Shown piece after piece: positions 2,721 to 57,316 of a stretch of DNA of 64,000 nt; positions within the stretch are counted from its first letter, which is position 1; every line of letters begins with the position of its first letter. A program made the translations under genes and the position numbers. The stretch is from IMG/VR virus record IMGVR_UViG_3300024308_000016, positions 124,001 to 188,000 of that record; one strand, 5' to 3'. The notes beneath the pieces are model-generated. The model was not told the DNA's origin and did not search any database. It worked only from the letters and a program-made list of their open reading frames with translations.

Positions 2721-4760
2721 ATGTCGAATATCGCGAAAGCACGGGATTTCATTCACATGGATCCCGAGGAAGTGCTGAGTTATCCTAAGCGTTTCCAGAT
2801 GGAGTTTGACAATGGCGAGATCCGGGAAGTGCAGCGCAAGCTGACGTGGGCATCGATGTTCGCGTGGCGTATCTTGAGGAAGTTCCCCGGCACTCCGGTA
2901 CTTCCCGATCACCACTTCCAGTTTATCCTCGATGGCAAGAACCTGCAGTCGAGCACTCATAACAAGTGCGCGTCTAACATCTTCAAGACCATCGTGGGCG
3001 ACGGATTTATCTCGCCGGAAGATCGAGAGGTCTTCCAATACGAGGTGCAATGCTTCGTCAATGACCTGTACAACGGGTTGCGGGAGAAGTCGGGTCGACA
3101 CCTTCAGACCATCGACATCGTGGACTGTATCAAAGTGATGATGCACCCACCAGTGCTCGAAGCCTGGGTAAATGCAGAATCCACCCCTCGTGGGGTGGAC
3201 GCAGTAAACACCGTCATCAAGGATTCGATCTACAAGGACAAGGAGCTCAAGTACAACGGCATGGCCATGGCTATGCGTAGTGGCTCCGTCAAGGCCAACC
3301 AGGTCTACCAATCGGTGGGCGTTCGCGGTTTCCCGAAAGAGATCGATGGACGCATCTACCGCACGATGATCTTGTCCAACTACGTGTTTGGCATCACGAA
3401 CTTATATGAGTTCGCCGCTGACTCTCGTGGTTCGGCTGAGCACTTGATGGCCACTGAGAGCCCCTTGCAGGATTCGGAATACTTCTCCCGGCGCCTGCAG
3501 CTGCAAACGTGTGTGCTCGAGCGTATCGAGTATACTGACTGCGGCACGTCCAAGACCATCCCCTGGCTTGTCAAGCCGTCGGCCTACGACGAGTCCTCGG
3601 GTGATTTCTATCCAGGCGATCTGAAGTTCATGATCGGCAAGAAGTACATCGATCCCAAAACCGGTGGACTCAATACGATCTTCGGCTATGAAAAGCACCT
3701 GGAAGGCAAAACCATCCAAGTGCGTTCGGTGCTCACCTGTGAGCACTCCGACCCTCATGCCGTCTGTCAGGTCTGCTTCGGGATGACGGCCAACAACCAC
3801 TCCCGCTGGGCCAACGTGGGTGTGGTGGCCGCTACCACCATCGTGTCCAAGATCTCACAAAAGACCTTGTCTACCAAGCACCACATTGCATCGGGCCAGG
3901 GCTCGGGCATTGTGCTGAACTCGGCACTGAAGACCTACTTCCGGAGAGGTCCAAAGAACACCGACTATGTGCTGGAGAAAGATACGGCCACCTGGGGTCT
4001 CAAGCTCATCGTACCCAGAGATGGAGCACTGGGACTGGTGGACATCGAAAACATGGATGCCGATCTGGAAAAGCTCAACCCCGAGCGGATCACCGGCTTT
4101 GACATCATCCGGATGGTGGGCAAGAATCCTATCACCGGGGTGGAGTTCTCGGACTCGTTGACCGTGATGCAGGGCAACCGGATGGCGTCCATGAGCATCA
4201 AGCTGCTGCGCTATATCCAAAAGCACGGCAAGGAGATGGACAACCGCAACAACTTCGTGATCGACCTCAGGCACTGGGACTTCAACGATGTGCTGCTGAC
4301 GCTGCCTGACATTCAGGTGTCGTTCTCTGCGCACGGCAATGCGATCGCGGAAGTGATCGAGTCCAAGTTCTCCCAGATCTCGGAGCGCAACTCGGAAGAC
4401 GCACCTCTGCGTGTGCTCAACCAAGTGTTCGATATGGTCACTCCAAAGCTCGATGTGCCTTTTGTGGCATTCGAGTGCGTGGTCTATCCGTTGCAGGTTC
4501 CCCGACAAGGCAGTTACGCAATGAGTCGTGGGTCCCCCAACCCCGTGATGGGCATCGGCAAGGACCTGATCCTCAACCGCTCTATGGGCACAGCATGCGC
4601 TTACCAGGAATGGAAGTACAACATTCTGAGCCCTAAGAGCTACGTCAAGACCGGCAAACCCAGCACCGTGATGGATGTGTTCATCTGTCCGCGTGAGGTG
4701 GTCGCTGAGTTCAAGGCCCGTAAACTGGGACCTCACCGCATCAAGCGGCACGCTTTCTAA
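2721..4760 (+). CDS. Non-virion RNA polymerase beta' subunit, C-terminal part (phiKZ gp74-like)
   Basis: 679 aa; bridge-helix-like DSEYFSRRL, then DCGT, Zn site RSVLTC...C..CFG and trigger-loop-like GVVAATTIVSKISQKTLSTKH. Confidence 0.9.
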   Translation: MSNIAKARDFIHMDPEEVLSYPKRFQMEFDNGEIREVQRKLTWASMFAWRILRKFPGTPVLPDHHFQFILDGKNLQSSTHNKCASNIFKTIVGDGFISPEDREVFQYEVQCFVNDLYNGLREKSGRHLQTIDIVDCIKVMMHPPVLEAWVNAESTPRGVDAVNTVIKDSIYKDKELKYNGMAMAMRSGSVKANQVYQSVGVRGFPKEIDGRIYRTMILSNYVFGITNLYEFAADSRGSAEHLMATESPLQDSEYFSRRLQLQTCVLERIEYTDCGTSKTIPWLVKPSAYDESSGDFYPGDLKFMIGKKYIDPKTGGLNTIFGYEKHLEGKTIQVRSVLTCEHSDPHAVCQVCFGMTANNHSRWANVGVVAATTIVSKISQKTLSTKHHIASGQGSGIVLNSALKTYFRRGPKNTDYVLEKDTATWGLKLIVPRDGALGLVDIENMDADLEKLNPERITGFDIIRMVGKNPITGVEFSDSLTVMQGNRMASMSIKLLRYIQKHGKEMDNRNNFVIDLRHWDFNDVLLTLPDIQVSFSAHGNAIAEVIESKFSQISERNSEDAPLRVLNQVFDMVTPKLDVPFVAFECVVYPLQVPRQGSYAMSRGSPNPVMGIGKDLILNRSMGTACAYQEWKYNILSPKSYVKTGKPSTVMDVFICPREVVAEFKARKLGPHRIKRHAF

Positions 4761-4767
4761 GCACCAC

Positions 4768-4814
4768 TGATCCTCGGAGAGCTTCGGCTCTCCGGGGGTC
4801 AGCTCTTTTCTTTT
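4768..4814 (+). terminator. Intrinsic terminator
   Basis: TGATCCTCGGAGAGC-TTCG-GCTCTCCGGGGGTCA with a UUCG loop, then CTTTTCTTTT. Confidence 0.85.
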
Positions 4815-4861
4815 ATGACCCATGGAGGTTATCCACTGAGAGAATCTTTGAGGTAAACCGT

Positions 4862-7180
4862 ATGACTGTGACTGCTACTAAGCCCAGGAACCCATATGGA
4901 GAGCTCGCCATCTATTCCCACAGCTTCATCGTCAAGGGTCATTGTGACCGGGTGATCAAGGCCGCCCGCACGGTGCTTGATCGCTATAGCGAAAAGAAGT
5001 GGGAGAAGGTCAAAGTCGGAGACGGTGAGTTTGTCAACCGCCAAGTCATCGACAAGCGATACGGGACGGCGTTTCCCGATGGCGTCACTTTCCAGTTCCA
5101 CAAAGGGCAATTCAACGAATTCAAACAGCTGCTGCAGTCCATGGAGGTCTACATCGATGCCATGGACATCTACACAGCTCCTACCTACACGCCTCGAAAG
5201 GTGGAGTACGATCTTCGGGAAGGCCGGGTCCTTCGGGACTACCAAGACAATGCCAAGGAGTTTGCACGAGCCGACATCAGCTCGGGTGACCACTTCTCCA
5301 AACTGATCGCCATGCCCACGGGCACCGGCAAAGCTCTGAGTGCCGACACACTCATGGTCACCCGGGACAAGGGAGTGATCCCTTTAAAGGAAGTGATCGT
5401 GGGTGATGAGGTCATGGCGCCTGATGGCTCCTGGACTGTGGTGTTGGGTGTGTATCCCCAGGGGCTGAGGAAGTCCTGGACTGTCACGTTTTTGGACGGT
5501 CGCTCAGTGACATGCGATGCTGAGCATGACTGGGAAGTCATGAAGAATGGCTGTATGGACACCCAGGTGGTCAACACCGAACAGTTAGAAGAGCTGGTTC
5601 TCAGTGATCCGTACTGCGTGCCGTTCTTTGACCCACTGGTGTACTTCTCTGAGCGAGAGGACTACTACGAGGTCACGCAGGCGTTGGTGACAGCTGTGGA
5701 GCGCTCAGGCTTCATCCACGACGAGCAGTTGTACATCGACTGCCCGACTCCGGAAGCTGCCACTGCTTTGGTCGATCTTGCTCACTCCCTGGGTTCGATC
5801 GCAGCACTGAGTCAGATCCTTGCACAGGGCATGCAAGTGTTGGTGCACAATCGCTTCTTGGCCAAGACGCTGTATGAAGCGATCAATCCAGATCGCCGAG
5901 CAGGGATGACACAAGACGCCTACATCCGCAGGCAAACCAACATCACTGGAGTGCCGATCTCCCGTGTGGTGCCCGAGGATGTGTGTGACATGATCTGCAT
6001 CGAGGTCGATCACCATTCTCACCTGTTTGTGCTGGCCAACTTCATCGTCACCCACAATACCGTCACCAGCTGCGCCATCGCTGCTGAAGAAAAGACCCGC
6101 TGGCTCGTATCTGTATTGCCAAAGTACAAGGACAAGTGGGGCTCTGATGTGGTGGAGAACCTGAACCTCAAGCCCAAAGAGGTGATGATTGTAGAGAGCA
6201 CCGATCAGCTGCGTGGGCTGATTGACATGTGCAAGACCCACGGCACCAAGAAACTCCAACCCGTCATCGTTGTCACCTTGACTACGCTGGCGACATTTTT
6301 CAAGCTGTGGATGAAAGACCCGCAGGGCTGCATCGAGGACTATGGCTGTGAGCCTATGGACCTGTGGCGTATCTTGGACATCGGCACTGTGTCGGTGGAC
6401 GAAGCGCACGAGCACATCTACAGCATCTACTTGCTGGCGATGCACCTGCATGGACCCAAGTTCGTCTCCATGAGTGGCACCATGGTGGCGGAAGATCCCT
6501 TCGTTGAGATGATCCAGAAAATCATCTTCCCGATGGTCAAACGCTATGACCAAGTCAAGATGGGTAAGTACATCGACGTCGAGTTCCTGGGATTCTCCAT
6601 CAAGCGGGAATTCAGGCACAAGATCCGGTGCACGGCGTTCGGTAGAAACGACTACTCGCATGTGGAGTTCGAGAAGTCCATCATGCGCAACAAACTCGTC
6701 CTCAATGCCTGGCTCATCATGATCGAGGTCATGATCAGTTACAGCTACTACGACCGAAGGGTCAAGGGTGACAAGCTTGTCGTGTACGCCGCCACCACTG
6801 ACATGGTCAACATCTTGGTCAACCGCTTCAAGCAAACGTACCCGGATCTGGTGATCATGCGCTACGCCAAGACAGAAGGCGACAAGTACAAAAACATCCT
6901 GAGCGCCGACATCACGGGCTCAACGCTGCAGTCTTCTGGGACCGCGGTGGACATCCCCAATCTCATCACCGTCATCTGCACCACCATGGTCAACTCCGCC
7001 AGGACCAACTTGCAGATGCTGGGACGATTGCGGGATTTGGCCGGCAAGCAGATGAAGTGCCTGATGCCCTTTTGCAAGGACATCCCCAAGCACCGATCGT
7101 ACACGGCGTATCGAGCAGACTTGTTCCAAGACCGCTCTAAGTCCATCAAGACGTTCTACTACGACCGAGATCTCGGTTAA
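4862..7180 (+). CDS. SF2 (DEAH-like) helicase, phiKZ gp75-like, intein-containing
   Basis: 772 aa; LRDYQ Q-motif, Walker A MPTGTGK/T split by an intein, VDEAHE Walker B, SMSGT motif III, QMLGRLR motif VI. Confidence 0.9.
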   Translation: MTVTATKPRNPYGELAIYSHSFIVKGHCDRVIKAARTVLDRYSEKKWEKVKVGDGEFVNRQVIDKRYGTAFPDGVTFQFHKGQFNEFKQLLQSMEVYIDAMDIYTAPTYTPRKVEYDLREGRVLRDYQDNAKEFARADISSGDHFSKLIAMPTGTGKALSADTLMVTRDKGVIPLKEVIVGDEVMAPDGSWTVVLGVYPQGLRKSWTVTFLDGRSVTCDAEHDWEVMKNGCMDTQVVNTEQLEELVLSDPYCVPFFDPLVYFSEREDYYEVTQALVTAVERSGFIHDEQLYIDCPTPEAATALVDLAHSLGSIAALSQILAQGMQVLVHNRFLAKTLYEAINPDRRAGMTQDAYIRRQTNITGVPISRVVPEDVCDMICIEVDHHSHLFVLANFIVTHNTVTSCAIAAEEKTRWLVSVLPKYKDKWGSDVVENLNLKPKEVMIVESTDQLRGLIDMCKTHGTKKLQPVIVVTLTTLATFFKLWMKDPQGCIEDYGCEPMDLWRILDIGTVSVDEAHEHIYSIYLLAMHLHGPKFVSMSGTMVAEDPFVEMIQKIIFPMVKRYDQVKMGKYIDVEFLGFSIKREFRHKIRCTAFGRNDYSHVEFEKSIMRNKLVLNAWLIMIEVMISYSYYDRRVKGDKLVVYAATTDMVNILVNRFKQTYPDLVIMRYAKTEGDKYKNILSADITGSTLQSSGTAVDIPNLITVICTTMVNSARTNLQMLGRLRDLAGKQMKCLMPFCKDIPKHRSYTAYRADLFQDRSKSIKTFYYDRDLG
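5333..6058 (+). mobile_element. Class 3 (Ala1) intein, 242 aa, with a degenerate LAGLIDADG remnant
   Basis: Begins GK|ALSADT and ends FIVTHN|T. Block B is TCDAEHDW, block F is MICIEVD, block G is VTHN. Removal restores the P-loop GTGKT. Confidence 0.92.
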
Positions 7181-7186
7181 CACAGC

Positions 7187-7240
7187 AAAAGCTCCCTCTC
7201 TCCAGCCGCAAGGCTGGAGAGAGGTAGAGCTCTTTTTTTT
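7187..7240. terminator. Bidirectional terminator between convergent genes
   Basis: CTCTCTCCAGCC-GCAA-GGCTGGAGAGAG (7196-7223), with AAAA upstream and a T-tract downstream. Confidence 0.85.
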
Positions 7241-13023: not shown

Positions 13024-13108
13024 TCATTCAAAAAAAGATAGGGACCTGTCCATAGATGGACAGTCCCGCTTTCCGCATCCCCCTGTATACCTCTTCAAAG
13101 ACACTGTT

Positions 13109-13654
13109 ATGATTTCCACCAAACCGAAAAACACTGCGCAGCAGATCTATGACGGCTTCAAGGTCGGCTCCGGCGACAACTGGGACGAGCTGGCCAATGG
13201 CCAAGAGGAAAAGATCCGCGCGATCATCGCCGAAAGCTCCGTGGGCATCAAGACTGCCACCGACGACGTGGTCGCCGCCGGCCTGATCGACGAAGAATAC
13301 AACGTCATGGCGCGCGGCGTGATGCGCGACCTGCAGGACTTCGCTACGCGTTTCCAGATCCTGACCGAACGCCGCGGCGGCCGCACCGGTCCCACCAAGG
13401 ACGACAAGGACTACACCGACTACATGAACCTGGGCCTGGAATACGTGGCTCTGGACCAGGAAATGAGCGTGGTCTTGCCCATGGGTCTGGTGAACCTGGC
13501 CGAATACCAGGGCCGGGCCCAACGCGTCTTCCAAGAGCGTGAACTGGAAAAGGCCCAGGACGTGAATGTCATCACCGACGTGCAAATCAAAGAACCCAAG
13601 CCGGCACAAGAGCCGGCACCTGAAGCCGACACCGCCGAGGAAGCCCAGCAATGA
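13109..13654 (+). CDS. Conserved hypothetical protein (ends ...DVNVITDV... plus an acidic tail)
   Basis: Start moved to ATG 13109; strong C/G3 codon bias; ATGA overlap with the next gene. Confidence 0.75.
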   Translation: MISTKPKNTAQQIYDGFKVGSGDNWDELANGQEEKIRAIIAESSVGIKTATDDVVAAGLIDEEYNVMARGVMRDLQDFATRFQILTERRGGRTGPTKDDKDYTDYMNLGLEYVALDQEMSVVLPMGLVNLAEYQGRAQRVFQERELEKAQDVNVITDVQIKEPKPAQEPAPEADTAEEAQQ

Positions 13655-15324
13655 GCGAGAACACCCATCTGCCCGAGATCCCGGAAGAAGATCCCTTCAA
13701 GCTCCAGGAATACGTGCCCGAACCCCCAACTGCTCCTCCCGTGTACCGTCCGGCCGCGCCTGGCCACGCGCCCGTGATCAGCTCCGCGCCTGAAGTGCCT
13801 CCGGCAGAACCCACAGCTGCACCCCAAGCGCCCCAAGCAGCAGCCCCGGTCAATCCCCGTGACCCTTTCCGCGCGATCGTGGACTCCCTGGCCAGCGGCG
13901 AGCCCGCTCGCGCCCAGATGGCACGCGACATGGTCTCCGACAAGCAAACGCCAGCCATCGAAAGCCTGCGTATGCCCTCGGCGGACATCCACCAGAACAC
14001 GGACCTGCTCAGCCGCTTCCCCAACATGACCAAGTCGGCCTCGGAAGACGACGCTGAATGGCTGTCGACCTTCATCGACGGCCTGCGCATGGTCTCGGCC
14101 AACCGCCAGTACCTGAATGCCCTCACCCGTGAAGGCTCCGACTGGCGCCAAGGTCTGTTCGACAACGGCGATGTCATTCGCTCGCAGATCCCGCGCTTTG
14201 CCCGTCCCAAGGGCGAGATGCTGACTGGCTCGTCAGCCATCCAGCACGCTGTCAGCTACCTGGGTCTGGGTGATACGTTCACTGCGGCCATGTGGAATTC
14301 CGGCTTCTGGGTGACGTTCACTCCGATGCCCGAAGTGGCGTGGCTGGAACTGAACCGTCTGCTGGGTGCTGAAGAAGTGCGTCTGGGCCGCAACAGCTAT
14401 GGTCTGGCCCACTCGGGTACCACGCAGCTGACGCAGGAGACGATCGTCAACTACGTGCTGCAGTTCGTGTACTCCACGTCGGTGAAGTCCAACGAGATGC
14501 CCGTGGCCTCCATCCCGCAGTACCTGTCGGTGCACGACATCAACTCGTTCCTGTGGGGCTTCGTGTGCGCCAACTTCCCCCACGGCTTCACCATCGAGCG
14601 CTCGTGCGTGGTCGACCCCACCCACTGCCGCAACAAGGTCGAAGAAACCCTGGAAATGCCTGAACTCCAGGTGGTGGACAACTCCGTGCTCGATACCGGC
14701 CTGCGCGCGCACATGCGCAAACGTCAACAAGGCTCCGTGCCTTTGCAAGCGGTGCTGGACTACCAGGAAAAGCTGGCTCTGAATACGCCTCAGGTCGTGG
14801 ACGTGCAGACGGGTTCGGGCAAGGTCGTCAAGATGACGCTTTCCCCGCCCACCGCTCTGCAAGCATTCGATATGAGCCACGCCCACGTGGACATGGTCAC
14901 TACAGCCGTGCAAAAGACCGTCACCCAGGACACGTCGCTGCGTGAGCGTCACATGGCCCTGAACGACTACTTCACCGCCACCGAGATGCGTATCTACCAG
15001 CACTGGGTCAAGTCAATCGAACTCGGCGATGGCAACATCGTGGAGAAGGAAGAAGACATCCAAAAGCTGCTGGGCACGTTCTCCAAGGACGCGACCATGC
15101 GCATGTCGTTCCTGGACGAGATCAGCAAGTACATCGACAAGTCGGTGGCCTCCATCATCGCCCTGTCGCCCATGGTGTGCAAGAAGTGCGGCGCAGACCA
15201 TTCCCGCAAGTCGGCCCACAACCCGGAACTGCGTGACGTCATCCCATTCGACATCACCCATGTTTTTTCGCTCCTCGCCGAGTTCAAAGCCCGGATGGTC
15301 CGCGCGAGGGCATCCATCGAGTAA
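13651..15324 (+). CDS. Putative tail/baseplate-hub assembly chaperone (T4 gp26-like; G partner of a possible G/GT pair)
   Basis: 557 aa; two Cys pairs (C....THC and CKKC); ends near an F codon inside a T6 run; the function call is inference. Confidence 0.7.
   Translation: MSENTHLPEIPEEDPFKLQEYVPEPPTAPPVYRPAAPGHAPVISSAPEVPPAEPTAAPQAPQAAAPVNPRDPFRAIVDSLASGEPARAQMARDMVSDKQTPAIESLRMPSADIHQNTDLLSRFPNMTKSASEDDAEWLSTFIDGLRMVSANRQYLNALTREGSDWRQGLFDNGDVIRSQIPRFARPKGEMLTGSSAIQHAVSYLGLGDTFTAAMWNSGFWVTFTPMPEVAWLELNRLLGAEEVRLGRNSYGLAHSGTTQLTQETIVNYVLQFVYSTSVKSNEMPVASIPQYLSVHDINSFLWGFVCANFPHGFTIERSCVVDPTHCRNKVEETLEMPELQVVDNSVLDTGLRAHMRKRQQGSVPLQAVLDYQEKLALNTPQVVDVQTGSGKVVKMTLSPPTALQAFDMSHAHVDMVTTAVQKTVTQDTSLRERHMALNDYFTATEMRIYQHWVKSIELGDGNIVEKEEDIQKLLGTFSKDATMRMSFLDEISKYIDKSVASIIALSPMVCKKCGADHSRKSAHNPELRDVIPFDITHVFSLLAEFKARMVRARASIE
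15262..15269 (+). other. Candidate -1 ribosomal frameshift site GTTTTTTC
   Basis: Six Ts (15263-15268) in a gene that otherwise uses TTC for Phe; the -1 frame is open from 15237 to 15815; stem CCTCGC/GCGAGG at 15273-15309. Confidence 0.55.
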
Positions 15325-15380
15325 CTGCAGGCTTTTACCATCCTCTTGACGACGCATTCCACGAGAAGGTCGTCAAGAAT

Positions 15381-15815
15381 GTGAACCTGCAGGAATACCT
15401 GGAAGATATCCTGAGCCGCTTGAAGTTCTCCACCTATGCAGAGGCGGATCGCTATCTGAAGCTGCATTATGAGACGGTCTTCAAGATCCACGACCATAAC
15501 AAGGACTTCCAGACTACGGGAAAAGCATCTGTGACACTTCGGCACTCCGGGATGGGTGCCGGGGACTATGAAGTCATTGACAAGCTGCTTCCCGCATATA
15601 CTGACAACTTCATCCGTGAGGTCACGGATATGTCATTTGAACGCTACATCATGCTGCCCAGGCCCATGATGCATGCGTTTAACCGCAGGTGCAAGATCAT
15701 CCATGTCGAGCGCTTGAAGAAGGAAGATGAAGCTAAGGCCAAAGCCGAAGAGCAGCTCAGGCTGCTGATGGGAGGCAAGCTTCCCACAGGCGATCATCCT
15801 CGCACTCCGATGTGA
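15381..15815 (+). CDS. Putative T-partner of a tail assembly chaperone (T4 gp51-like C-terminal region)
   Basis: 144 aa from GTG; the frame extends upstream without a canonical start to 15237; the C-terminal segment MSFERYIMLPR...ERLKKE is gp51/GT-like by eye. Confidence 0.7.
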   Translation: MNLQEYLEDILSRLKFSTYAEADRYLKLHYETVFKIHDHNKDFQTTGKASVTLRHSGMGAGDYEVIDKLLPAYTDNFIREVTDMSFERYIMLPRPMMHAFNRRCKIIHVERLKKEDEAKAKAEEQLRLLMGGKLPTGDHPRTPM

Positions 15816-15816
15816 C

Positions 15817-15873
15817 GCATAGCTACCTGTCCCAGAGCCCCCACTACGGGAGGCTCTGGGGCGGAGGCTATGT
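15817..15873 (+). terminator. CATA...TATG-bracketed long hairpin
   Basis: CATAGC...CCCAGAGCC-loop-GGCTCTGGG...GCTATG. Confidence 0.7.
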
Positions 15874-16062
15874 CTATCATTTGGTAAAATTGAATCAAGA
15901 CCACAGTTACGCAAGAAGGGGGCGTGCTTTGTAGAGGTGAGGCACTGGCTGCCTACGTGAGACTTTGCCTGTCGCACGTTTGGGGCTCATGCAGCTTCAT
16001 CGCCTCTATCTTTTTATCTAGTCATCTCCATCTTTGATCGTCTCCAGAGCAAAGACTTATCT

Positions 16063-16092
16063 CTACCACCGTCCCTTGCGGGGCGGTGGTAG
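16063..16092 (-). terminator. Hairpin after the DNA polymerase gene
   Basis: CTACCACCGTCCC-TTGC-GGGGCGGTGGTAG (GCAA loop on minus strand). Confidence 0.7.
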
Positions 16093-16099
16093 GGACCTT

Positions 16100-26434: not shown

Positions 26435-26470
26435 GCAGGTGCTGCGCAAGCAGCACCTGTTTCTTTTTTT
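26435..26470 (+). terminator. Intrinsic terminator
   Basis: GCAGGTGCTGC-GCAA-GCAGCACCTGT followed by a T-tract. Confidence 0.88.
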
Positions 26471-57272: not shown

Positions 57273-57316
57273 CCCCACTACCCTTGCGGGTAGTGGGGAG
57301 CAGTGCTCTTTTTTTT
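57273..57316. terminator. Terminator at the dnaB 3' end
   Basis: CCCCACTACCC-TTGC-GGGTAGTGGGG; T-tract on the + strand and a GCAA loop on the - strand. Confidence 0.8.

Follow-up and report, generated by a model that had tools for sequence, protein, structure and literature searches.

Does the gp77-like gene of phiKZ-like giant phages make a single protein, or does a run of T's close to its 3′ end allow some ribosomes to slip back one base and add a further domain? The question arose from a 64 000-nt stretch of the IMG/VR virus record IMGVR_UViG_3300024308_000016 (positions 124 001 to 188 000; hereafter the window), in which an original prediction, made from the sequence alone, proposed that a 557-aa gene is fused at low frequency to a downstream 144-aa ORF by a programmed −1 frameshift, giving a G/GT-type tail chaperone pair in a phiKZ-like phage. 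The elements of the locus, all on the + strand, are as follows.

13651..15324 (+): zero-frame gene of 557 aa, homologue of phiKZ gp77, PhiPA3 gp074, SPN3US gp39 and Goslar gp081 (phrog_4585), giving the short product
15263..15268 (+): T6 slippery run, read in the zero frame as GTT TTT TCG
15267..15324 (+): dual-coding overlap, the zero frame encoding the conserved C-terminal helix (SLLAEFKARMVRARASIE) and the −1 frame a Pro/Arg/Gly-rich linker (FAPRRVQSPDGPREGIHRV)
15273..15309 (+): stem CCTCGC/GCGAGG with an inner CGGA/TCCG pair, conserved in the window's clade only, a possible stimulator
15325..15380 (+): 'intergenic' 56 nt that is really coding in the −1 frame (AGFYHPLDDAFHEKVVKN), with the conserved H...F(G) motif and the first helix of the extension domain, and without a start codon of its own
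15267..15815 (+): −1 frame read after the slip, 182 codons plus the stop at 15813-15, encoding the linker and a ~160-aa all-helical extension domain (phrog_12109 family)
15381..15383 (+): GTG taken by gene callers as the start of a 144-aa ORF, more probably an internal Val codon
16060..16095 (+): terminator-like hairpin

Sequence architecture of the locus

Every sequence detail of the original prediction was confirmed. The zero frame at the T6 run reads CAT GTT TTT TCG (H V F S, with Phe539), whilst the −1 frame has a TGA at 15234-36, is open from 15237 to the stop at 15813-15, has the GTG at 15381 as its first ATG/GTG/TTG and reads ...CFFAPRRVQSPDGPREGIHRVTAGFYHPLDDAFHEKVVKNVNLQEYL... The arms of the stem lie at 15273-78 (CCTCGC) and 15304-09 (GCGAGG), and the inner CGGA/TCCG pair at 15292-95/15299-302. 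The predicted fusion is 539 + 182 = 721 aa, as originally proposed. Codon usage at the site is unusual for this gene, since TTT represents 2 of 21 Phe codons (the other 19 being TTC), GTT 1 of 44 Val codons (the one at the site) and AGG 1 of 31 Arg codons (the one in the 3′ arm of the stem).

Within the window alone, however, neither the T6 run nor the stem exceeds chance. There were 14 overlapping TTTTTT matches on both strands (8 distinct runs) against 11.2 expected, and the stem region folded no better than shuffled sequence (z = +1.07; 174 of 200 shuffles folded at least as well). Megablast of the locus against GenBank phages and tblastn of the 144-aa ORF gave no match, searches of Pfam and NCBIfam returned nothing for either protein, a PDB sequence search was likewise negative and no Rfam family was found at the site. 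The evidence is comparative.

Conservation of the T-run and the −1 frame

The original prediction had named loss of the T-run or of −1 continuity in orthologues as an outcome that would count against it, and in order to assess this we examined 77 loci. These include 70 metagenomic/IMG-VR loci, whose proteins share 16-83% identity with that of the window, plus phiKZ, PhiPA3, SPN3US, Stratton, Goslar and Bacillus phage AgentSmith, and they span 27-63% GC. Both features were conserved in every one of the 77, with a T5-T8 run 29-121 nt (mostly 45-65 nt) before the stop, lying in an open −1 frame that continues 122-182 codons into a homologous domain, whilst the +1 frame continues only a few. The rest of the 70 gp77-like genes (83.6 kb) holds only 2 T6 runs and no T7 or longer, whereas the site itself has T6 or longer in 65 of 70 and T5 in the other 5. 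The −1 frame is open from the run to the stop in 70 of 70 loci against 20.4 expected, the +1 frame in only 32 of 70.

Such conservation also rules out, to all intents and purposes, a homopolymer sequencing error or a frameshift mutation that has split one long gene. Homopolymers are error-prone on some platforms, but the same arrangement appears in 77 independent assemblies and isolates sequenced with different methods, and the zero-frame tail after the run is itself conserved and ends at a conserved position. Both frames are conserved in the overlap (consensus F..L......I..R in the family alignment A4) and, between the window and L003, one of the related loci, 14 of 16 codons of the overlap are identical, versus 62% gene-wide. 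No in-frame fused gene appeared among the top 150 of 1875 homologous clusters. We also considered whether the 686-aa phiEaH2 protein might be an in-frame fusion, but it is not: SPN3US-like and Erskinevirus proteins are simply longer at the N-terminus and keep the T7 run plus a separate −1 ORF.

The −1 frame is coding upstream of its first start codon

Could the two reading frames instead be separate genes, the downstream one translated only by its own initiation (at GTG 15381 in the window, or at a non-canonical or coupled start), with the T-run merely reflecting conserved Val/Leu-Phe-Phe residues? In favour of this, gene callers and GenBank annotators call separate small ORFs everywhere, F539 is invariant and could favour T-rich codons, and a GAGAAGG lies 11 nt before the GTG, which could allow some independent initiation and is not excluded, although it is not conserved in position in L003. 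Across the family, however, called starts are scattered over profile positions 2-37, and no start or RBS is conserved. The first canonical start in the −1 frame ranges from −133 to +374 nt relative to the zero-frame stop; in 49 of 58 loci it lies downstream of the conserved His column and in 40 of 58 downstream of the conserved Phe column, whilst in 4 of these 58 (L010, L040, L057 and L063) it lies beyond the core YE motif, phiKZ, outside this set, being a further such case. In phiKZ, 218 nt are unannotated for this reason. The window and L003 differ synonymously in YHPLD, within the stretch before the GTG, and an AF2 model places a confident helix there (pLDDT 78-91, helix 10-19). Moreover, given the use of TTC and the single GTT in the window gene, the protein sequence does not explain the T-run. 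We consider the two-gene explanation very unlikely.

Phase of the slippery run and candidate stimulators

Family-wide, all T7 and T8 runs and the codon-position-3 T6 runs give canonical T TTT TTY/TTT heptamers, 53 of 70 in total, and no T7 run is in the one phase that would not. The window's own site is T TTT TCG, which is not a canonical X XXY YYZ heptamer: tRNA-Phe in the P site can re-pair perfectly from TTT 15265-67 to TTT 15264-66, whilst the A-site tRNA-Ser cannot, and TCG is a common codon here (19 of 45 Ser), so that there is no obvious pause. Whether the window's sequence qualifies as a slippery site in the strict sense is not settled by these observations, and the comparison with P2 E/E′ made in the original prediction is imperfect, since only the P-site tRNA can re-pair.

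The stem is real and conserved within the window's clade, its core pairs being invariant in 9 clade members, and its 3′ arm always uses a rare AGG or AGA Arg codon. It begins only 2 nt after the A-site codon (a 2-4 nt spacer), shows one compensatory pair and almost no covariation, and is not thermodynamically special; the data do not decide either way whether it acts as a stimulatory structure. A family-wide downstream RNA structure was rejected (mean z −0.14 against windows from the same genes).

Ribosomal or transcriptional slippage

The same fusion would arise if the phage or host RNA polymerase added one extra U on the T-run in a fraction of transcripts. Consistent with this, the conserved element is a homopolymer of 5-8 T, most often T7, without family-wide downstream structure, the run occurs in all three codon phases among T6 sites, and phiKZ-like phages transcribe with their own unusual multisubunit RNA polymerases. 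On the other hand, the runs of T5-T6 in 23 of 70 loci, the window included, are short for efficient polymerase slippage in bacteria (usually 8-9 or more), and all 47 T7/T8 runs are in phases that give a canonical heptamer, which polymerase slippage would not require. RNA contigs of a phiKZ-like phage cross the T7 run without an indel, showing co-transcription and an unedited majority mRNA, but only assembled contigs of RNA runs were examined, in which minor variants are invisible, RNA indels were not quantified at read level, and they leave the presence of indel-bearing transcripts above the DNA background undecided. Low-level transcriptional slippage is therefore not excluded, although we regard it as unlikely to be the main route.

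Taken together, a programmed −1 frameshift that makes a 721-aa fusion is strongly supported, and a ribosomal mechanism is favoured, an explanation in which we have fairly good confidence. In this view most ribosomes would translate the gp77-like gene to its TAA at 15322-24 and make the 557-aa protein, whilst a minority would slip back one base with tRNA-Phe on TTT, read TTC GCT CCT... through the short linker into the helical domain, and make a 721-aa isoform (...DITHVFFAPRR...) lacking the last 18 residues of the short form. Both products would be needed, so that the T-run, the zero-frame stop and the open −1 frame are all kept across phiKZ-like phages. The analysis itself demonstrates the architecture of the locus, its conservation and the coding nature of the stretch upstream of the GTG; that slippage occurs on the ribosome, how efficient it is and that the clade-specific stem stimulates it are inferences, and there is no direct product or ribosome-profiling evidence for the fusion. 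The predicted phiKZ junction reads ...STFFYFGGLEVK, with FPHLIPIDMLSTFFYFGGLEVK as the predicted tryptic peptide.

Searches found no report of this frameshift in the searchable literature, in agreement with the original prediction, which knew of none for phiKZ-like jumbo phages, and it is not annotated as a frameshift product in any of the nine phage records inspected. phiKZ and its relatives are the main models for phage nuclei and are candidates for phage therapy, yet most of their core genes have no known function. The finding adds a recoding event to their core genome and corrects the annotation of a region that is mis-called in every record inspected, from truncated small ORFs to overlapping ORFs to the unannotated gap in the phiKZ reference. 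It also predicts a new ~80-kDa protein that proteomics searches based on current annotations would miss, and it offers recoding research a very large natural series of T-run sites, with about 1900 clusters at 50% identity, T5 to T8 runs, three phases, 27-63% GC, and Gram-negative and Gram-positive hosts.

Relationship to tail and baseplate assembly chaperones

The original interpretation was only partly supported, since the −1 fusion and the phiKZ-like nature of the phage were upheld whilst the label 'G/GT-type tail chaperone pair' was not. In lambda G/GT and P2 E/E′ a −1 frameshift near the end of ORF1 gives an ORF1-ORF2 fusion at a fixed low ratio, P2 using a T6G run, and the arrangement is conserved although the sequences diverge; the locus studied here shares the position of the shift and the resulting fusion, by comparative inference only. 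The gene does not, however, lie between tube and tape-measure genes, its neighbours being a virion RNA polymerase beta subunit, gp79-like and gp78-like genes and a DNA polymerase. At 557 aa it is four times the size of lambda G (ORF1 being ~100-150 aa in those systems). Its AF2 model (pLDDT 87.7, pTM 0.83) had no fold match in the PDB, nor did that of the extension, and matches to annotated tail chaperones in BFVD were at noise level (E 0.26-0.66, with low probability). gp77 is not mentioned among the 40 phiKZ virion proteins, nor Goslar gp81/82 among the 28 modelled proteins, and a role in assembly was not assayed; these absences do not tell whether the pair is needed for tail assembly. The function of the pair is unknown; it appears to be a non-virion protein, possibly an assembly factor.

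There is only a weak hint of kinship with the T4 gp26/gp51 baseplate-hub assembly chaperones (PF12322). Foldseek against BFVD gave E 1.8e-4 (TM 0.27/0.47) to a T4-like 'baseplate hub assembly protein' and 1.9e-5, likewise to a 'baseplate' protein, and an atlas search gave leads at TM 0.45. None of 58 family members reached the curated PF12322 cut-off, with 2 of 58 giving sub-threshold PF12322 (E ~0.008) and phrog_150 hits, whereas T4 gp26 and gp51 themselves scored 8.8e-64 and 3.9e-52. Profile-profile comparison (hhalign of A4 against A5, a T4 gp26/gp51 profile) was not significant, at 8% probability, and together these structural and profile comparisons point neither clearly towards nor away from a relationship. 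T4 gene 26 also makes two related products, 26 and 26′, but by internal initiation rather than frameshifting, and the proteins are 208-249 aa.

A more speculative reading, which we consider doubtful but which is not excluded, is that all nucleus-forming (phiKZ-like) jumbo phages and their relatives make a previously unrecognised core protein, a ~680-720-aa frameshift isoform of gp77 carrying a novel helical domain, and that this short/long pair is the functional counterpart of the two-isoform tail or hub assembly chaperones (lambda G/GT, T4 gp26/26′). If so, the rule of a conserved frameshift in tail assembly genes would extend to a lineage where no such pair was known.

Amongst other −1 frameshifts, that of phage T7 gene 10A/10B (capsid) also lies close to the end of a gene and gives a minor isoform that shares the whole N-terminal body and replaces the last residues with a C-terminal extension. 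The gene family is different and the T7 extension is short, whilst here the site is a plain T-run and the extension a conserved, independently folding ~160-aa domain; the features of the T7 system were not tested in this analysis. E. coli dnaX (A AAA AAG with a downstream stem-loop and an upstream SD) is likewise a −1 shift by the bacterial ribosome on a homopolymeric heptamer, and the window's clade also has a downstream stem, but in dnaX the shift gives a shorter product and has strong, well-defined stimulators, whereas here it extends the product and no family-wide stimulator was found.

Finally, the terminator-like hairpin (16 pairs plus a T tract) lies between the extension ORF and the convergent DNA polymerase gene and is the likely end of the transcription unit, by analogy with the RNA contigs of the phiKZ-like phage, which run from gp77 to just past the −1 ORF stop.

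Sequence features of the T-run and its surroundings

The region lies within the 272-kb IMG/VR contig IMGVR_UViG_3300024308_000016, and its features are as follows.
13651..15324: the 557-aa ORF.
15234-36: TGA in the −1 frame, which is then open to 15815.
15263-15268: T6 run, read CAT GTT TTT TCG in the zero frame.
15273-78 and 15304-09: stem arms CCTCGC and GCGAGG respectively, with an inner CGGA/TCCG pair.
15381: GTG, before which the open −1 frame contains no ATG, GTG or TTG.
15831-15860: 9-bp hairpin (CCCAGAGCC/GGCTCTGGG), 16 nt after the stop of the −1 extension.
16060-16095: strong 16-pair terminator-like hairpin with a T tract, between the convergent extension ORF and DNA polymerase gene.

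Each descriptive statement made in the original prediction, including the positions of the T-run, the −1 frame and the stem, was confirmed. Within the 557-aa gene TTT accounts for 2 of 21 Phe codons, GTT for 1 of 44 Val codons (the one at the site) and AGG for 1 of 31 Arg codons (the one in the 3' arm of the stem). Slipping on Phe539 gives a product of 539 + 182 = 721 aa with the junction ...DITHVFFAPRR. Taken alone, however, these features are not beyond chance, since T6 runs in the 64-kb window occur at the expected rate and the 72-nt region folds no better than dinucleotide shuffles (z = +1.07). Other homopolymer runs, which appear to be intergenic and were not examined for recoding, are found at 13030-13036 (A7 on the + strand, between the two upstream ORFs) and, as T7-T8, at 7233-7240, 26464-26470 and 57309-57316. 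The extension ORF (15324-15812) has a clearly lower GC (0.52) and GC3 (0.67) than the upstream gene (13651-15321; 0.62 and 0.80), which is the GC-richest of the genes sampled in the window. The reason for this is unknown, one possibility being weaker codon selection on a rarely translated frame.

Identity and genomic context of the gene

The 557-aa protein matches phrog_4585 (unknown function; E 1.9e-73) and no Pfam family. A tblastn search found it in 189 GenBank phages, all of them phiKZ-like jumbo phages and relatives, at up to 27.5% identity, and it corresponds to PhiPA3 gp074, phiKZ gp77, 201phi2-1 gp136 and EL gp47. Synteny is kept, with a virion RNA polymerase beta subunit (phrog_2962, E 5e-100) and a gp79-like gene lying upstream on the other strand and a convergent DNA polymerase (phrog_3011) downstream. 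The proposed ‘phiKZ-like’ assignment is therefore right, whilst the context is not a tail module. The DNA of the window as a whole was best represented in a subsurface metagenome, probably its source, and near-identical stretches also occur in invertebrate-gut and wastewater runs, so this phage lineage is environmentally widespread.

Conservation of the T-run and the open −1 frame

Whether the T-run and the continuity of the −1 frame are kept in related phages had been named in the original prediction as a point on which it could fail, and we therefore examined relatives of increasing divergence. One close relative (L003, a Logan contig), with an 81%-identical protein, shares the T6 in the same phase, the same stem and a GTG at the same place. 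The 56 nt between the zero-frame stop and the GTG read AGFYHPLDDAFHEKVVKN in the −1 frame of the window and DGWYHPLDEKFKTDVVQK in L003, and four of the five YHPLD codons differ only synonymously, which is the signature of translated sequence, yet this stretch has no start codon.

In order to extend the comparison we retrieved graded relatives sharing 67% down to 16% protein identity with the window's protein (identities taken from the alignments), both from metagenome assemblies and from 59 IMG/VR loci found with a profile, and added phiKZ, PhiPA3, SPN3US, Erwinia phage Stratton, Goslar and Bacillus phage AgentSmith. In all 77 loci a run of 5-8 T (40 T7, 18 T6, 7 T8 and 5 T5 among the 70 scored together) lies near the end of the gene, usually 45-65 nt before the stop, and sits inside an open −1 frame. 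This −1 frame continues 122-182 codons beyond the zero-frame stop, whilst the +1 frame continues only a few. The remaining 83.6 kb of the same 70 genes contains only two T6 runs and none longer. The −1 frame is stop-free from run to stop in 70 of 70 loci against 20.4 expected, compared with 32 of 70 for the +1 frame, and the loci span 27-63% GC.

The extension is a conserved domain lacking its own start

The −1 peptides align as one family (phrog_12109 in 52 of 58), in which a His...Phe-Gly motif follows directly after the zero-frame stop, then a core ...A..L...YE..fGI.dH... and ...EFL.LPR. The first canonical start codon in the −1 frame lies anywhere from −133 to +374 nt relative to the stop, downstream of the conserved His column in 49 of 58 loci and of the Phe column in 40 of 58, and even beyond the core YE motif in four of the relatives (L010, L040, L057 and L063) and likewise in phiKZ. 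A profile search of 1.84 billion representatives found 1,875 clusters, of which the top 150 are all 104-186 aa with called starts scattered over profile positions 2-37, and none of these is an in-frame ~700-aa fusion. AlphaFold2 folds the window's 163-residue stretch confidently (pLDDT 87.9) as an all-helical domain, the first helix of which (residues 10-19) lies upstream of the GTG. The zero-frame tail after the run is also conserved (F..L......I..R) and is modelled as a confident terminal helix. Both frames are therefore under selection in the 15-20-codon overlap, as expected if both products are made.

None of the nine GenBank/RefSeq records inspected annotates a slippage here, showing instead separate small ORFs, an overlapping ORF or a gap. 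In the phiKZ reference (NC_004629, 11443-11903, minus strand) 218 nt are left unannotated between PHIKZ077 and PHIKZ076.4, and the latter (80 aa) is only the C-terminal half of the 152-codon −1 extension of gp77. Bacillus phage AgentSmith (4345-4793), a relative with a Gram-positive host, keeps the same T7 run and −1 extension with an analogous 215-nt unannotated gap before gp12, and its gp11 is annotated ‘putative baseplate hub assembly protein’. In Erwinia phage RAY (2601-3149) gp266 is annotated as an ORF overlapping the end of gp267 by 136 nt, using an upstream −1-frame start, a third way in which annotators have dealt with the same start-less extension. Full-text literature searches, which did not extend to subscription-only papers, produced no mention of this frameshift, including in the Chimalliviridae core-genome paper, the phiKZ and Goslar structure papers and the PRFect paper. 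Whilst −1 frameshifting as a mechanism is already known, the gene family and its universality in a heavily studied phage group appear to be new.

Mechanism of the proposed slippage

All T7 and T8 runs and the codon-position-3 T6 runs (53 of 70) form the canonical heptamers T TTT TTT, T TTT TTC, T TTT TTA or T TTT TTG, and no T7 run is in the one phase that would not. This phase preference, and the retention of the arrangement with only T5-T6 in 23 loci, favour slippage on the ribosome. The minimal common element is a zero-frame TTT preceded by T, on which the P-site tRNA-Phe can always re-pair, whilst the window's clade has the weaker T TTT TCG/TGT/TCA. The same clade, and only this clade, shows a conserved stem right after the run, in which the core CTCGC/GCGAG is invariant in nine members and the 3' arm always uses a rare AGG or AGA Arg codon, with inner extensions that differ between members and one GC-to-AU compensatory pair. 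This fits a compensating stimulator, although the spacing is short, the fold is not exceptional in the window itself and such a role is unproven. Against L003, synonymous sites around the run and stem are unusually conserved (14 of 16 identical codons against 62% overall, in the top 0.7% of windows), but this does not hold against a further relative, L006.

Transcriptional slippage remains the main rival. The RNA data examined were assembled contigs from four RNA runs aligned to a phiKZ-like IMG/VR locus (L075), which cross the T7 without an indel and continue from gp77 to within about 10 nt of the −1 ORF stop. In the region 3497-3529 of L075 these contigs end at 3509-3529, just past the −1 ORF stop, where a nanopore (ONT) cDNA contig has a poly(A) loose end, and there is a variable extra A after 3517. 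This is probably a transcript 3' end. Whilst this says nothing about minor edited species, it shows co-transcription and an unedited majority mRNA. The sequence observation held in full, and a programmed −1 frameshift, as originally proposed, is strongly supported by the comparative evidence. We consider recoding at the T-run very likely, and that it is ribosomal, as inferred from run length and phase, probable.

Function and the proposed tail chaperone role

The gp77-like model is confident (pLDDT 87.7, pTM 0.83) but has no PDB fold match, and nor has the extension. Against predicted viral structures the gp77-like model matches its own family and, more weakly, metagenomic ‘baseplate proteins’ (E 4e-28 for a 687-aa one, 1.9e-5 for a 312-aa one) and a ‘T4-like baseplate hub assembly protein’ (E 1.8e-4, TM 0.27/0.47), whilst annotated tail assembly chaperones appear only at E 0.26-0.66. 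The ESM atlas gives leads to clusters carrying PF12322, and two of 58 members touch PF12322 (E ~0.008) and phrog_150 ‘baseplate hub’ (E 4e-4). PF12322 covers both T4 gp26 and gp51, which NCBI names ‘gp26 family baseplate hub assembly chaperone’. In T4 (3803-5229 of the retrieved locus) both proteins match this family strongly (8.8e-64 and 3.9e-52), so they are paralogues, and gene 26 also has an annotated internal product, 26'. A profile-profile comparison with a gp26/gp51 alignment, however, gives only 8% probability.

phiKZ gp77 is not mentioned in the phiKZ virion structural atlas paper, which reports 40 constituent proteins, and Goslar gp81/82 are not mentioned in the Goslar virion structure preprint, whose model has 28 proteins. 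The protein is thus most probably a non-virion factor, and a distant relation to hub-assembly chaperones is possible but unproven. The interpretation in the original prediction was only partly borne out, since the G/GT-type tail chaperone label is not supported as stated: membership in the lambda G/GT family fails on location, size and fold, and what is shared is the expression logic. The gp77-like protein of the window also has two Cys pairs, C..C and CxxCG..H (residues C319, C326, C510 and C513; DNA about 14605-15189), suggesting a zinc site. Four of 58 members give sub-threshold YgiT-type zinc-finger hits, and hhalign pairs the CKKCG motif with the CPECG motif of T4 gp26.
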